From: Paraphysomonas bandaiensis
Taxonomy: Eukaryota > Protista > Chrysophyceae
Length of the DNA stretch: 64,000 nucleotides
Reading direction: 5' to 3'
NCBI GenBank assembly: GCA_965644295.1
Contig: CBFFRP010000378.1
Span: 372,001 to 436,000, forward strand
Part shown: positions 53,402-59,941 of the stretch, piece after piece
Position numbering within the stretch: the stretch's first letter is position 1
Layout: every line of letters begins with the position of its first letter
The notes under the pieces: generated by a model
Seen by the model: only the letters and a program-made list of their open reading frames with translations
What the model was told of the DNA's origin: nothing
Databases searched by the model: none
Made by a program: the position numbers and the translations under genes

Positions 53402-54120
53402 GCCTTAATCTTAGTATGATAGCATCGTATATGTCTAGATGTGTAGTATACGATTGAAAGATTGTTATGTTTTACTTTTCAGTTTTTTAGATATGTGTAT
53501 TCCATATATACATGTATGTATAAGAATACATACATACATAGTAAGAGTGTAATATACGCTATGATCTTCATAGTGTGTGTGGTATACTGTATATGTATAG
53601 TTAGTACAGTGGACTATATGATCTGGTCCTGTGTATTCAACTACTCTGAATGGAACTGGAAGGTGCCATACGGGCATTATGAGGTGGTGTTACTGGAACT
53701 TTGAGGAAGAGAGGCACACAAAGAGGTAGAGATCACTAGATTAACCAATAGAAGCTTGATAAATTGAAAGTCGACTAGATGATAGGATAATAGTGACTTC
53801 ATATCTCTAGATATGCATACATATCTGGATATGCAGATTTGGTTTTATACTGTAAATATTCTAGATATATCATACATTTGGTGCGGTATTTCCGGATATT
53901 TTCAAAAATCCGATTAAAAAGTTATATATTCAAGTTTTTTATTACTACAATAACACATATATCCGGATATCTAGACACCCACTGAAGATATCTGTAAAGA
54001 GCTACAGTACATCATCAGTATGGATGTACGACGTACTGTTATGTATGTATACATATAACAAGCAACTGCCTCTGCATACAATTCTTTACTTTAACCATAT
54101 TTGCATAAAAACTACATACA

Positions 54121-57100
54121 ATGGATACAACAACACTACCCATTACAGAACTAAGGAATGAATTTTCTGGTTGTCTTGATGGCAGTCTTTCTGCAAGTGA
54201 TTTCCTTCGCATTCTTCGTGCAACTGACAGTCAAATATTTTCTGGTTGGCATCATTATGAAAACATATTTGATACATATGTGATCTCTCAATGCAATAGA
54301 GTTATAGAAGCATGTTCACATTTACTTCAACTTGCAATTTCAGGTAAAAATGTAGCGATTGTGATGACTGGATGTGGCACTAGTGGAAGAATAGCCTTTC
54401 TAACTGCCAGACGGTTCAATACCATACTCTCAGATCATGGGATGGAGAAATGCTTCTATTACTTGATATCAGGGGGAGATTCGGCGTTGCTACTCTCAGA
54501 TGAACTACCTGAAGATGATCCCATTGTTGGTGCTAATGACTTGGAAACGCTGATTCGAGACAATGGACGAGATGGATCCTATCTTATTGGAGTCACATGT
54601 GGTCTATCGGCTCCGTACGTTGCTGGTCAGTTGGAATATATGATGTGGAGCACTAGTTCTGTGGAAAGCTCTTTTACTGGATGTGCTGTTGTTGGCTTCA
54701 ACCCGATTTCTCTTTCTCGAAATGTGCCGATTGAAAAAGCCCCTGGGCACTGGACCTTCCGGGACATAGCTCTCCGGTTACAAACATTATGTACAAGCAC
54801 AACTAGTGGGGTGCCGAGATATGCTGCAGTCACTCCTGTTGTAGGACCGGAGCCGGTGGCCGGATCCAGTCGCATGAAAGGGGGTTCAGCAACTGCTGTG
54901 CTGTTGGATGCTATCTGCCGCTGCGCAATTAATGCTGTTATCTCGCCAACGACATCTAAACCTATCAATCATCAGTTAGAAACCAGTTTTACTGATTTTC
55001 AAAATACACACGCTCGTACTTATGCTGCATCATTAGCTGTCAGCTCTCCAGGAATGTCAAAAGGTAGTGTTGGGGGACTTCCTCTTGTGATGGAGGCTGC
55101 TGCTGATGCCCTGCGGACGAACTCCCGCCTCATTTTGTTGGGTGCTGGGTCTGCCGGATGTATGGCGGTCATAGATGCTAGCGAGATGCCCGATACTTAC
55201 GGTTAGTAATAGAACATTTTTGGGTTTGTATGAGTGCTGGATTCATATCAGGATCTCCGTTTGATCAAGTTCGTGCTTTTGTTCTTGGCGGGTGGGACGA
55301 ATTAGGTAATAAAGATGGAGATATTTCCTCTCAAAGCTATCTCCACCGAATATCTCTTCAGCATTTTAGGGAAGATATTCTTCCTAGTCTGAAGGAAACG
55401 GATGCCGTGGTTATTGTGTACAATAATACCGATATGGACGTTGTCACTGCATTTTCCTCTGTTGCACGTGAGATTGAAGACAAAGGAGCAAGAGTAAATA
55501 TTCTTGGTGCACTCTCTTCTAGCGGTAGCGTTCTCAACGAGGTATTGCAGCTATGTGAAGGAAGGCATGTGCTTGTGGATTTACCTGGTGCTCATACTGG
55601 ACTAACAGACTTCGCTCTCAAGCTAATGCTGAATGCCGTTTCTACTTTTGCTCAGGTGCAAGTATATGCCGTGAGCCTGCATGTCCAAATTTTATGGCGA
55701 TTCTTTCCATGAGATATTTATGCATATTATAAAATGTTAATTAGGCGTCCGGTCGTGGTGCTGTCCACAAGGGCCTCATGATAACAACTGGGCCAGCGAA
55801 CGATAAAATATATAGCCGATGTGTCAGGCTACTGACGGAAACGATACCGAACACAACTGCAGATGATGCGGAAGAGGCACTTATAAAAGCGATATATGGT
55901 AAATATAGCTATTATGTATACGCTAGTTTTTTTCATGTATTCCTCATTGGTTGTTAGGCGTGGATGTGTTGGACGAGTCGTTGCGGAAGGCTCCGAAATC
56001 AGCACATATTGCCGCCTCTATTCTTCCTGCAGGTAGTTTCTTGTACCTATCCTTATATTATGGGGTGATCTCGTGTACAGATCGTCGACACTGTGCTCAG
56101 ACTGTGCTTCCGGTTGCAATGCTTCTTCTTGCGGGTAAGAAGTGCACTGAAAAGTGGACTGTAGATGCCGCGCGGATGGCCCTCTCATCTCAGCCTGTTG
56201 TTGGGTTGATCCTCAAGGATATTTTTAATCCCACTAAGGAATTTTCTGGAGAGTGTTCTGCTGTAGTATTTGATCTAGGGGGAACGCACGTTCGGTGTGC
56301 TCTGGCCTGTGGTGGTCGTGTGTTCGGAAGAATTTACAAGAAAAATATCGGCAATGATAAGTCTGTTGGCAGTGTCATGAAGATAGTTAAAGAAGTATAT
56401 GACCTTGTCTTGTCGCAAGAGAGTTCCAGTGTGATGCCTAGCACAGTGGTATTTGCGCAACCGGGATGTGTTAACGACGATGGGACCATTTGTTCTCTTT
56501 CTAATTTCCCTTGGGAAGGGAATATTCCCATTGAGTCATTGCTCCGCGACGTTTTACAGTGTGATGCAAAGATTGTGATCGTGGATGATGCATGCGCAGC
56601 GTTATGGGGTGAAGTAACGAGATACAATGATAGTACTGAGTCAGCTAAGGTTGGCAAGACTATGTGTATGTTGACTGTCGGTACTGGTGTTGGAAGTGCA
56701 GTTTATATGAATGGCCGAATGCTAGAAGGTAGTCGAGGGTTGGTAGAATGCGGTCACCAAATTGTGTATCCGGACGGTCGTATTTGTGGCTGTGGTCAAA
56801 AAGGATGTTTAGAATCCTATGCATCAGGACCCGCAATGTTTAGAATTGCCTGTGAGAAAGGGCTATCTGTAGTTGATGCGGAGGGCGTGATATCTTTGGC
56901 TCAATCAGGAAACAAAGATGCACAGGAAGTATTTTCTTATTGCGCACGATACCTGGCAATTGGGTGTTTAAACATGGTGCGTGCATACGACCCTGCTGTG
57001 GTGTTTATTAGCGGAGGATTGGGGGTGGCGATGTATAGTGAAGTCATAGCGCAATATAAAGAGATATCATGGAACTTACATGACGATTTATCTAGTGTTG

Positions 57101-57180
57101 AAATTATCCCTGCTCAATGTGTTGAGGCGGGCATCACTGGCGCTGCTATGATATCTGCCAGAAATAACTGTGATGTATGA
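54121..57180 (+). CDS. Fusion protein: GKRP/MurQ-like double-SIS region plus C-terminal ROK-family sugar kinase
   Basis: SIS motifs GCGTSGRIAF, ISGGDSAL, LPEDDP, GVTCGLSAPYVAGQL, GFNP, VGPEPVAGSSRMKGGSAT, IDASEMPDTYG, LKLMLNAVST. ROK motifs DLGGT, DDACAA..GE, LTVGTGVG, ECGH, CGCGQKGCLESYASG. Introns at 55202-55251, 55656-55744, 55899-55957 and 56033-56080. Confidence 0.9.
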
Positions 57181-57484
57181 GATATGTGATATAGTTCGGA
57201 TGGTTCTTTGTCTATGCTAGTTAAATTGATATTGACACGAAGGCCCATGAGTAGTAGGATGATTGTAATTCTCTTGTTACTCTAATATAGTTAACAAAAT
57301 TATGAAATGTTCATGATTAACGGCAACAAGAGCTTTAGTAAGTCAGTAACCCACAAATTGTAATATGGACAAGATCAATTTTAAGTGTTAAGACTTTTTA
57401 AATATTACTTTCACCTTCCATGCATATAAGTTGCGCATATATTTTCATTCTGGAAAAATAAATTACACAATATACACTCTGCAG

Positions 57485-59941
57485 TTATACGAGTAAGTAT
57501 GACAGATCTTCAACTCTGAAACAACTCCGAACAACACGTCGTTCTTTTCCTCTGCCATTTGTCCACTTATCTACAAATTGCATCTCCACAGCATACTCAC
57601 TCTCTCGTGGAAACAACAATGATCCATCTGCATTTCTCAACTTGTGTGCATCACTCAGATCAAACTGCCATTCAACGGAAACGTCTGCAGGCCCTTTAAC
57701 TTTTTCCCATCCATCGTTCAGGTCTTCCTCATTGCTATGAAGAACTGCATTCCATCTACCCGAGATCTCAGTTACAGCGTCGGTACTCGTAACCACTGTC
57801 ACATACGGATCCCTTAGACCTAACCGCTTGGTGAAAGAAATATGAGAGCCGTGGCTAACTGTCCCAACTGGTTGGACAATAATTGTAATATTAGTTCTAC
57901 TGCTCCTTATTTTAGCTTTCTTGTTTGCCAAATGTAAGGAAGTATATCCACTGATATAATTGTTGTCACTTGTCATAACCATTACACCTCTGCTTGCAAA
58001 TATATTCTGTGTTTCGAACTTCATAATGTCCTTATCCAGAATTTCGCAATCCTCTGTCCCAATTCTCGTTGATGGTTTTTGCTGTGCAAATACACGCATG
58101 TTAGTAAGTTGAAGGGGATCATAGTGATCCCACAAAAACCCCTCAGGCACCATGGACGGAGAAGCAGTGATTTCAGCTGAAGGGGAAAATGTCACCACAG
58201 TAGAAGGTGGGGGGGTAGGGTTTATGTACTCGTAAATACGGATGTAATTGACAACCATCGCCTGCGGTAAAGCACTCGCAGAGATGCCAGAATTCTCAGG
58301 GCAGTCAACCCAGGAGTTGCAGTCACCAGTACCTGCATGTCCAAACAAACAGAATATTAGCAAGATACTTCAAGAGTTTAAATCTACAAATAACGAAGAT
58401 GTAACCAATTATCACAAAGAAATTTATTAAGTGCACACAGCACATGACGCCTGTGAGTTTACCGATTCCCATGGCGACGTCCATTAAGGTAACGTTAAAC
58501 CTCGTGTCCTGGGCGAGTACTTCCACTCCATCCACGTAGTATACTAGCTTCTCAGGAGTCCACTCAAGTGCATACAGATGAAAACTATTCGTCCAATCCA
58601 CACCATTATCAACTGTAGAGCCTTGTTGAGCATGAGAGCCGTCTTCATTGTAATGCTGAGTCAGAAACAACGAGGTTGGGTCTCTACCGATTAATTCAGC
58701 GAAATCTACTTCTGGGGGCCATGATTTGTCGGTAGGAAAAAGACCAATATATCCAGTAAGACCAAAGCCACTTGGGAGCTTAGCTTCCACTTCCCATTTT
58801 CCATATACCTTCGATAGCACATGCAACAAATTAAATTTCGAACAACATCAAACTATTTAACTGCCTTAAGCAATAAATACACAGCATTGATGTAAAGGCC
58901 TACAAGCTATACCTGAGCATGAGGTGACCACGACCCTATCCCAGCAGTTGAGTATTCTCTGCTACCGGGGTTAGATACATTCGTTGCCCACAAAAATAAC
59001 TGTCCATTTCGAATCTCTGCATTATCCTTAATGAAGTACGCATTCGAGCTTGAACCAAAGGGACCCGAGTAGATATTAAAATCCCAACTAAGCTCTTCTT
59101 TACTCCGTGTAAATTCATAGTTCCACACAAGAGTAAATAAATCAGAGTTATTCGTTATTTGATTGAACGAGAGTTTGTCATAAAACATTTTCGACTCGAA
59201 GGACCCAGCAGATCCACAGTTGTTGTAGAGGTTCTCCGCCTCAACTGTCAGTACTGTTGCGGGATCAAATGATCTAAGCTCAGAAGCGATCTTTATTCCA
59301 GTTAAATTAGCGCTATGGATCTCAGAATTATCTGCTTCAGCGACAGTTAAAGAAATGTACTCGTTGGAATCGAAATCAACGGTCAAGACAAGGTTGTACC
59401 AAGTATCCGCAGATACTACGGGGACAGTGTCCCATAAACTATTCGGTAAAACTTGCCACACAGCAATATTAGGTGAAGATTCCACCCAAATATTCCATTT
59501 ATCCGGTATATAAGTGGATGCAATATTTTGTATACCACCAATCGTCGTGTACGTTGTGCCAGTGCCGTCATCTCGTGTATTTTGAATACTGAACTCAGGG
59601 CCCACTTGAGAACTGAATTCATATTCTTTGGGTAATTTCGCATAAACACTATATTGCCATACTCCATCCACACCAGAGAATACTTTTCTTCCAGCAATTA
59701 AATGATTACTATATAAACTATGATTAGCATTAGACCATAAGACGATACCATTCGAGCCCTCATATGATGCGTGTGTACTAATAGACATGTTTCCGATATT
59801 ACGAGAATAACATGATGTCACAACTTCTTCAAAAAACGTCCATTCTGTTAAACCATTATCAAAATTTTCATTAAAACTATAAATATTTGTAATAGTTGTG
59901 TGTATTAGTAAGATATACACCCATATCACAGAAAGGATCAT
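57485..59941 (-). CDS. Secreted multidomain GH16 glycoside hydrolase (laminarinase-like)
   Basis: Signal peptide, beta-rich N-terminal domain, YGKWEVEAKLP, WPPEVDFAE (ExDxxE), FHLYALEWTP...YYVDG, MVVNYIRIYE, P/T linker and an unknown C-terminal domain. Confidence 0.88.

Follow-up and report, generated by a model that had tools for sequence, protein, structure and literature searches.

A double-SIS protein of the GKRP/MurQ etherase family fused to a ROK sugar kinase in Paraphysomonas bandaiensis, a candidate for salvage of N-acetylmuramic acid

A single forward-strand gene at positions 54121–57180 of a 64,000-nucleotide stretch of Paraphysomonas bandaiensis DNA (contig CBFFRP010000378.1, positions 372,001 to 436,000; the whole stretch is called the window below) encodes a double-SIS protein of the glucokinase regulatory protein (GKRP)/MurQ type fused to a ROK-family sugar kinase. 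The gene has five exons and 937 codons, and specifies one polypeptide of 937 residues. On balance we think it probable, with considerable room for doubt, that the kinase and etherase halves of this protein convert N-acetylmuramic acid (MurNAc) from bacterial prey to N-acetylglucosamine 6-phosphate (GlcNAc-6-P) and D-lactate, as consecutive steps in one protein.

A first-pass annotation of the window, made from the sequence alone, had built the gene from four successive open reading frames (ORFs) on the forward strand, 54121–55206, 55230–55712, 55778–55957 and 55951–57180, positions that agree with the ORF list. Public sequencing runs were placed on window positions 53900–57400 for splice mapping. 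Two transcript contigs from different studies, X1 (2873 nucleotides (nt)) and X2 (2782 nt), each cover 54128/54219–57246, both halves included, in one record, although assembled contigs alone are no proof of a single RNA molecule. Four GT..AG introns are removed in both, with identical exon structure and a single reading frame. Exons 3, 4 and 5 are also joined in a contig from a further run, X4, and X10, a DNA contig, runs colinear to the window. The resulting gene model is as follows.

54121–55201, + strand: exon 1, with the start codon, SIS1 (GKRP_SIS_N at 54301–54645) and the start of SIS2; E = 9.8e-48 to Xenopus GKRP (PDB 3W0L)
Exon 1 motifs, + strand: GTSGR 54376–54390; SDELPEDD 54496–54519; SRMKGG 54868–54885; DASEMPDTY 55174–55200
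55202–55251, + strand: intron 1, 50 nt, GT..AG, phase 1, skipped in X1 and X2; the split codon is Gly
55252–55655, + strand: exon 2, remainder of SIS2 (GKRP_SIS_2, 1.1e-8); colinear with P0002 residues 382–517
55656–55744, + strand: intron 2, 89 nt, GT..AG, skipped in X1 and X2
55745–55898, + strand: exon 3, end of SIS2 and start of the GKRP lid domain (GKRP-like_C, 3.4e-4 on exon 3 alone)
55899–55957, + strand: intron 3, 59 nt, GT..AG, skipped in X1, X2 and X4
55958–56032, + strand: exon 4, lid domain
56033–56080, + strand: intron 4, 48 nt, GT..AG, in frame and stop-free, skipped in X1, X2 and X4; the homologue P0002 has no residues here
56081–57180, + strand: exon 5, last lid helices (56098–56202), a linker of about 20 residues and the complete ROK kinase; TGA at 57178–57180
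Exon 5 motifs, + strand: FDLGGT 56269–56286; VDDACAA (with the catalytic Asp) 56581–56601; GTGVG 56680–56694; ECGH 56746–56757; zinc motif CGCGQKGC 56785–56808

It can be seen that the reading frame is open over the SIS–kinase junction within exon 5, and the fusion is therefore independent of any splice. The first-pass annotation had argued the same from the presence of the lid helices and the kinase in the single ORF 55951–57180. They share this genomic ORF because intron 4 is in frame and free of stops; the ORF takes in that intron and opens with the final seven nucleotides of intron 3, which leaves the conclusion unaffected. The split codons of the model encode Gly, Gly and Asp, and an in-frame stop lies 15 nt 5' of the ATG. 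Exons were searched one by one, and the full-length structure, alignments and trees were built on the natural homologue P0002 and its relatives. The exon translations cover residues 6–975 of P0002 (977 residues) end to end and gap-free at 49–63% identity. The N-terminal end lines up with that of P0002 and has no presequence, from which we infer that the protein is cytosolic. Contig 8 of run X4 (55382–55707) extends into intron 2 (55656–55707), showing that this run includes unspliced RNA or DNA.

The SIS half was matched by the Pfam models GKRP_SIS_N (2.1e-39), GKRP_SIS_2 and GKRP-like_C, the last of these scoring under its gathering threshold on exon 3 because the lid is divided among exons; P0002, which is colinear, has all three above their cut-offs. 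Exon 1 matches human and rat GKRP with E of about 4e-38 and, over its final 40 residues, bacterial MurQ as well. The motifs GTSGR (residues 86–90), SDELPEDD (126–133) and DASEMPDTY (352–360, with DASE at 352–355) are intact, and the latter two, in the case of DASEMPDTY through its DASE, pair with the corresponding residues of Xenopus and human GKRP in the alignment. Glu128 and Glu131 of E-x-x-E-D in SIS1 and Glu355 of D-x-S-E in SIS2, the presumed catalytic acid/base glutamates, do not vary among 17 fused and 30 unfused relatives. GTSGR, S-D-E-x-P-E-D, SRMKGG and D-x-S-E-M-P-D-T are likewise kept in every one of the 17 fused homologues. Judged by its sequence, the GTSGR loop, SIS2, the lid and the glutamates place the protein in the double-SIS (GKRP-type) branch of the GKRP/MurQ etherase family.

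The ROK kinase is complete (Pfam ROK, 1.4e-39), with FDLGGT at residues 635–640, VDDACAA at 739–745, ECGH at 794–797 and CGCGQKGC at 807–814. Its matches in the PDB include Thermus glucokinase (3VOV, 2e-27), Escherichia coli NanK (2e-19) and the kinase domain of human GNE (5e-18). No Pfam match to an N-terminal helix-turn-helix or winged helix was obtained, the ROK domain being preceded by the GKRP lid, and the domain reads as the kinase rather than the repressor type. All 17 fused homologues retain the catalytic Asp, ExGH, the CxCGQ..C zinc motif and, within DxGGT, the Asp and Thr; conservation drops to 15–16 of 17 at a few neighbouring positions, among them the Thr of GTGxG and one Gly of DxGGT. 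From this pattern both halves look catalytically constrained. Each of the motifs named in the first-pass annotation (GTSGR, an ED pair and DASE.P.TYG in the SIS half; DLGGT, DDA, ExGH and a Cys-rich zinc motif in the kinase) could be located, and their joint presence is far beyond chance.

The NCBIfam equivalogs closest to the kinase are NanK, ROK glucokinase and allose kinase; since all equivalog scores fall far under their cut-offs, the sugar substrate cannot be named from similarity. One position does set the fused kinases apart. The position of residue 740, just before the catalytic Asp741 in VDDACAA, holds Asn in 37 of 38 free ROK kinases, where it contacts the sugar, and Asp in 12 of 17 fused kinases, the one in the window included. 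This Asn-to-Asp change may be a specificity determinant.

We next consider how widely the fusion occurs. When ORF 55951–57177 (409 residues, from the tail of intron 3 to the close of the ROK domain) was used as query in an exhaustive HMMER search, many proteins of 900–1300 residues were returned, with matches that extend over both the lid helices and the kinase. Pfam recognised GKRP_SIS_N, SIS_2, the lid and ROK in them, many having an extra C-terminal GNAT domain. A word-index search with P0002 showed that about 20 clusters at 90% identity share the fusion, most of which add GNAT as a third domain; the ROK part of P0002 as query gave six matches and nothing new. Most homologues are without taxon labels; two carriers bear a name, the haptophyte Chrysochromulina parva and a chrysophyte known from the single-cell assembly 'Chrysophyte H1'. 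All three carriers named or inferred so far are probably phagotrophs. The GNAT-bearing relatives are P0016 (GNAT at 890–1109), P0019, P0160 (a cluster that includes C. parva), P0159, P0125, P0028, P0011 and P0006, and there are two-domain relatives with GKRP and GNAT (P0183) or ROK and GNAT (P0005, P0018 and P0032). The AlphaFold model of P0002 has a pLDDT of 92.9 and a pTM of 0.76, with a disordered linker solely between lid and kinase.

In trees of the GKRP half the fused proteins group together with an SH-aLRT (Shimodaira–Hasegawa-like approximate likelihood ratio test) support of 99, and they do so in trees of the ROK half, where an 18-row core has 99 and the full set of 20 rows 88. A few apparently solo rows fall inside the fused clade and are mostly short, probably truncated models. 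The inner groupings are identical in both trees, with the haptophyte-type three-domain proteins as first branch and the subclade of the window's protein (with P0002, P0155, P0012, P0008 and P0156) lacking GNAT; the trees are unrooted or midpoint-rooted, and this branching order is read from them on that basis. Because the trees of the two halves agree, we conclude that a single old fusion, with later loss of GNAT in the window's lineage, is likely as the simplest history. A single-protein search of the genome found no GNAT domain, and there is no room for one between the stop codon of the gene and its convergent neighbour. Both the architecture search and the separate phylogenies had been suggested in the first-pass annotation. 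Its remark that the architecture was not known as described stands in that the literature searched contained no description of a GKRP–ROK or MurQ–kinase fusion, a mention in Veiga-da-Cunha et al. 2009 (Biochem J 423:323) remaining possible; it does not stand for sequence databases, where the fusion is widespread under automatic names such as the JGI label 'sugar kinase/MurNAc-6-P etherase'. The new elements are the covalent union of a eukaryotic double-SIS etherase with a ROK kinase, its spread over stramenopiles and one haptophyte, and the ancestral three-domain form; both domain families were already known, as was the chemistry, which is that of the MurK/MurQ route.

Two observations from these searches concern the domains in other settings. 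P0231 and P0276 are double-SIS proteins of GKRP length (583–625 residues) in Sumerlaeota bacteria, which means that the duplicated GKRP layout is found outside eukaryotes too. P0057, a metagenomic protein of 782 residues, has a NagA fragment, a ROK domain and a NagB-type domain in one chain, an amino-sugar pathway around a related ROK domain.

How might the fused protein act? In the route that we favour, prey peptidoglycan would be degraded in the food vacuole, for which lysozyme-like proteins, GH20 hexosaminidases and an exo-beta-N-acetylmuramidase (NamZ) with a signal-like N-terminus are candidates, and free MurNAc would reach the cytosol. There the C-terminal ROK domain would phosphorylate MurNAc at O-6 with ATP, the N-terminal double-SIS domain would remove the D-lactyl ether to give GlcNAc-6-P and D-lactate, and GlcNAc-6-P would be passed on by NagA or to UDP-GlcNAc synthesis. 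GKRP homologues of Naegleria gruberi and lancelet, as well as reconstructed ancestral GKRPs, are active MurNAc 6-phosphate (MurNAc-6-P) etherases, and inhibition of glucokinase by GKRP arose in jawed vertebrates only (bioRxiv 10.64898/2026.05.08.723886). Moreover, bacterial-type etherase in free-living protists has been linked to the digestion of bacterial walls (PMC7052976). Since the MurNAc kinases characterised so far are of the BcrAD/BadFG family (PMC5790795), one of ROK type would be new.

The gene content of the host fits such a diet. The 62.6 Mb of genome searched has about eight silicon-transporter loci and three strong radial-spoke-3 genes, and neither light-harvesting (LHC/FCP) genes nor PsbO were found in it; these genes suggest a stramenopile that is colourless, bears flagella and forms silica. 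Most likely it is a bacterivorous chrysophyte of Paraphysomonas type; a photosynthetic diatom, which the silicon transporters had at first suggested, was rejected on these grounds. NagA is present on a host-like locus and GH20 hexosaminidases on at least five loci. NamZ scored 221 bits at G000:C294:79087–79728 (locus L017, ~1354–2932); its locus is host-like, with an intron, the microsatellite typical of the host and a signal-like hydrophobic N-terminus. As a peptidoglycan enzyme of bacterial type in a eukaryote, it was possibly acquired by gene transfer. In Bacillus, NamZ frees terminal MurNAc from peptidoglycan strands (PMC8054146). The genome has one GKRP-like gene, two glucokinases of the bacterial Glk type and three ROK loci; of the two besides the window's, one looks like a fructokinase. 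It was searched without success for AnmK, for a eukaryotic-type GlcNAc kinase, for a hexokinase domain (Hexokinase_2) and for any kinase of the BcrAD/BadFG family (PF01869), to which the characterised MurK belongs. Eukaryotes have no phosphotransferase system (PTS), and as neither AnmK nor the MurK family was found, the tethered ROK kinase would be the natural supplier of MurNAc-6-P.

Three further observations were made in the genome. A PF01182 match on contig C46 was considered as NagB and rejected, since it looks like 6-phosphogluconolactonase. A long microsatellite of (ATAC)n type, which translates as TYIH or MYVC repeats, adjoins the NagA (L011 ~2574–2960), ROK-paralogue (L003 ~831–1342) and NamZ (L017 ~794–1391) genes, and may just be common in this genome. 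The convergent neighbour of the fusion gene (window 57485–59941, - strand) is a multi-exon gene with a GH16 glycoside hydrolase domain (7e-16) and no evident link to amino sugars.

A number of points weigh against the favoured route. The nearest named relatives of the ROK domain are glucokinases and N-acetylmannosamine (ManNAc) kinases, and the extra negative charge of the Asp beside the catalytic Asp may be ill-suited to the carboxylate of MurNAc. To our knowledge no ROK-family MurNAc kinase has been characterised, and we know of no MurNAc transporter. In the host genome, lysozyme-like matches are weak, muramoyl-L-alanine amidase (Amidase_2, Amidase_3) was not found, and nor was NagB with the PF01182 model. 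Mammalian GKRP, which has lost etherase activity, still has the catalytic Glu, so conservation of the motif is no proof of catalysis; this caveat had been attached to the first-pass annotation. An unlikely alternative that nevertheless deserves weight is that the ROK domain phosphorylates GlcNAc, glucosamine or ManNAc and the etherase uses MurNAc-6-P from another enzyme, with both halves, and the GNAT domain of relatives, converging on GlcNAc-6-P. The closeness of NanK, glucokinases and NagK among named ROK relatives would suit this, as would the P0057 chain, which places related ROK domains in GlcNAc catabolism; with no eukaryotic-type GlcNAc kinase found in the genome, the ROK protein may have to fill that role, and the Asn-to-Asp change may favour an amino sugar. 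However, the etherase would then be left without an evident source of MurNAc-6-P, given the missing AnmK, MurK-type kinase and PTS, and one kinase for both MurNAc and GlcNAc, as MurK is in Clostridium, would fit either reading.

The first-pass annotation had offered two explanations of its own, a kinase that makes MurNAc-6-P for cleavage by the SIS half and a sugar-phosphate sensor tethered to a kinase. In the latter, the GKRP-like half would exert allosteric control over the ROK kinase, convergent with the vertebrate GKRP–glucokinase pair. The GKRP site does bind several phosphorylated sugars, even in unregulated GKRPs, and the pTM and short disordered linker of the P0002 model would allow a fixed arrangement of the domains. 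Against this, GKRP inhibition is confined to jawed vertebrates and directed at a hexokinase-family target, of which the genome search gave no sign, the etherase catalytic set is completely conserved, and the GNAT domain of relatives and the set of genes for peptidoglycan digestion suit metabolism; we regard a self-regulated kinase as improbable and found no positive support for it. Least credible of all is an artefact, whether two adjacent genes, a chimeric assembly or a pseudogene. Contigs by themselves leave that opening, but it is hard to reconcile with a frame that is open across the junction inside one exon, with structurally identical spliced contigs from two studies and a colinear DNA contig, and with exons that align gap-free to natural homologues of 900–1300 residues with the same domain order. 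Of the two original explanations the metabolic one is better supported, because the motifs are conserved in the 17 fused homologues, because the host is bacterivore-like and has NamZ, GH20 and NagA while searches of its genome gave neither AnmK nor a MurK-type kinase, and because relatives add an acetyltransferase, which speaks for metabolism rather than regulation.

The GNAT domain of these relatives matches PDB 3ZJ0 (2e-33), 4BMH (2e-25) and O-GlcNAcase (~6e-11). 3ZJ0 and 4BMH are bacterial homologues of the C-terminal pseudo-histone acetyltransferase (pseudo-HAT) domain of human O-GlcNAcase (PMC3814719, PMC3919268). Being joined to an etherase and a sugar kinase, the acetyltransferase of the relatives may have an amino sugar as substrate. 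A broader and distinctly tentative proposal, which we raise as possible and do not lean on, is that the family represents the eukaryotic MurNAc kinase so far missed, covalently attached to its etherase and the first such kinase of ROK type, and that it began as an etherase–kinase–acetyltransferase protein common to phagotrophic stramenopiles and haptophytes, which channelled amino sugars of prey walls to GlcNAc-6-P and whose third domain belongs to the pseudo-HAT family. If this were true, the pseudo-HAT domain of O-GlcNAcase would descend from an amino-sugar acetyltransferase.

Eukaryotic GKRP-like etherases probably serve in the digestion of bacterial walls, and many eukaryotes, like this host, lack AnmK and MurK. 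The fusion names a concrete candidate kinase for the supply of MurNAc-6-P in eukaryotes, the missing step in their use of MurNAc. It also bears on the evolution of GKRP, as it reveals, if the etherase assignment is right, the role of the ancestral GKRP in free-living protists, and its three-domain relatives link the O-GlcNAcase HAT-like acetyltransferase family to amino-sugar metabolism. Parts of the gene have already been seen in metatranscriptomes, where it could mark the use of peptidoglycan sugars by marine bacterivores.

In comparison with known systems, the SIS half is closest in layout to the eukaryotic GKRP-like etherases. The N. gruberi and lancelet homologues were reportedly identified as MurNAc-6-P etherases by Veiga-da-Cunha et al. 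in 2009. The window's protein shares with them the double-SIS and lid arrangement and the catalytic and phosphate-binding motifs, and is 36–42% identical to choanoflagellate, amoebozoan and invertebrate GKRP-like proteins. Those proteins are of about 600 residues and have no kinase, whereas here a ROK domain follows some 20 residues after the lid, and the fused forms make up a distinct clade marked by D-x-S-E-M-P-D-T-Y. Vertebrate GKRP (PDB 3W0L, 4BB9 and 4LC9) shows homology along the entire SIS region (E = 1e-47 to 4e-38), and its ligand-site Glu residues are kept. However, it has lost all or nearly all etherase activity and inhibits a separate glucokinase of the hexokinase family, in agreement with the earlier statement that this partner is separate and not a ROK protein, whereas the kinase in the window is attached and of ROK type. 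No hexokinase-family partner, as a vertebrate-type glucokinase regulator would have, was found in the host genome.

The proposed sequence of reactions, from MurNAc through MurNAc-6-P to GlcNAc-6-P and D-lactate, is that of bacterial MurK and MurQ in Clostridium acetobutylicum and Tannerella forsythia (PMC5790795). In these bacteria the two enzymes are encoded by separate genes, MurQ is a single-SIS homodimer and MurK has the BcrAD/BadFG fold, as opposed to one gene and a ROK kinase here; Tf_MurK belongs to PF01869, and the window's kinase is accordingly not of the MurK type. The ESM Atlas lists MurQ joined to ROK in Bacteroidota (about 574 residues) and to BadF/G in Ascomycota, Actinomycetota and Verrucomicrobiota, a lead not confirmed by alignment. 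As listed, these proteins also combine an etherase-type SIS with an ASKHA (acetate and sugar kinase/Hsc70/actin) sugar kinase in one polypeptide, but they have a single-SIS MurQ, none of their ROK domains is among the 150 closest to that of the window, and their origin was probably independent. Such a listing would suit a pairing of kinase and etherase that has recurred. Finally, GNE, the UDP-GlcNAc 2-epimerase/ManNAc kinase, had been put forward as a precedent for an enzyme–ROK fusion, and its kinase domain matches the ROK domain of the window. In both proteins an amino-sugar enzyme precedes a C-terminal ROK domain, that of GNE being a different enzyme of a different pathway, the synthesis of sialic acid.

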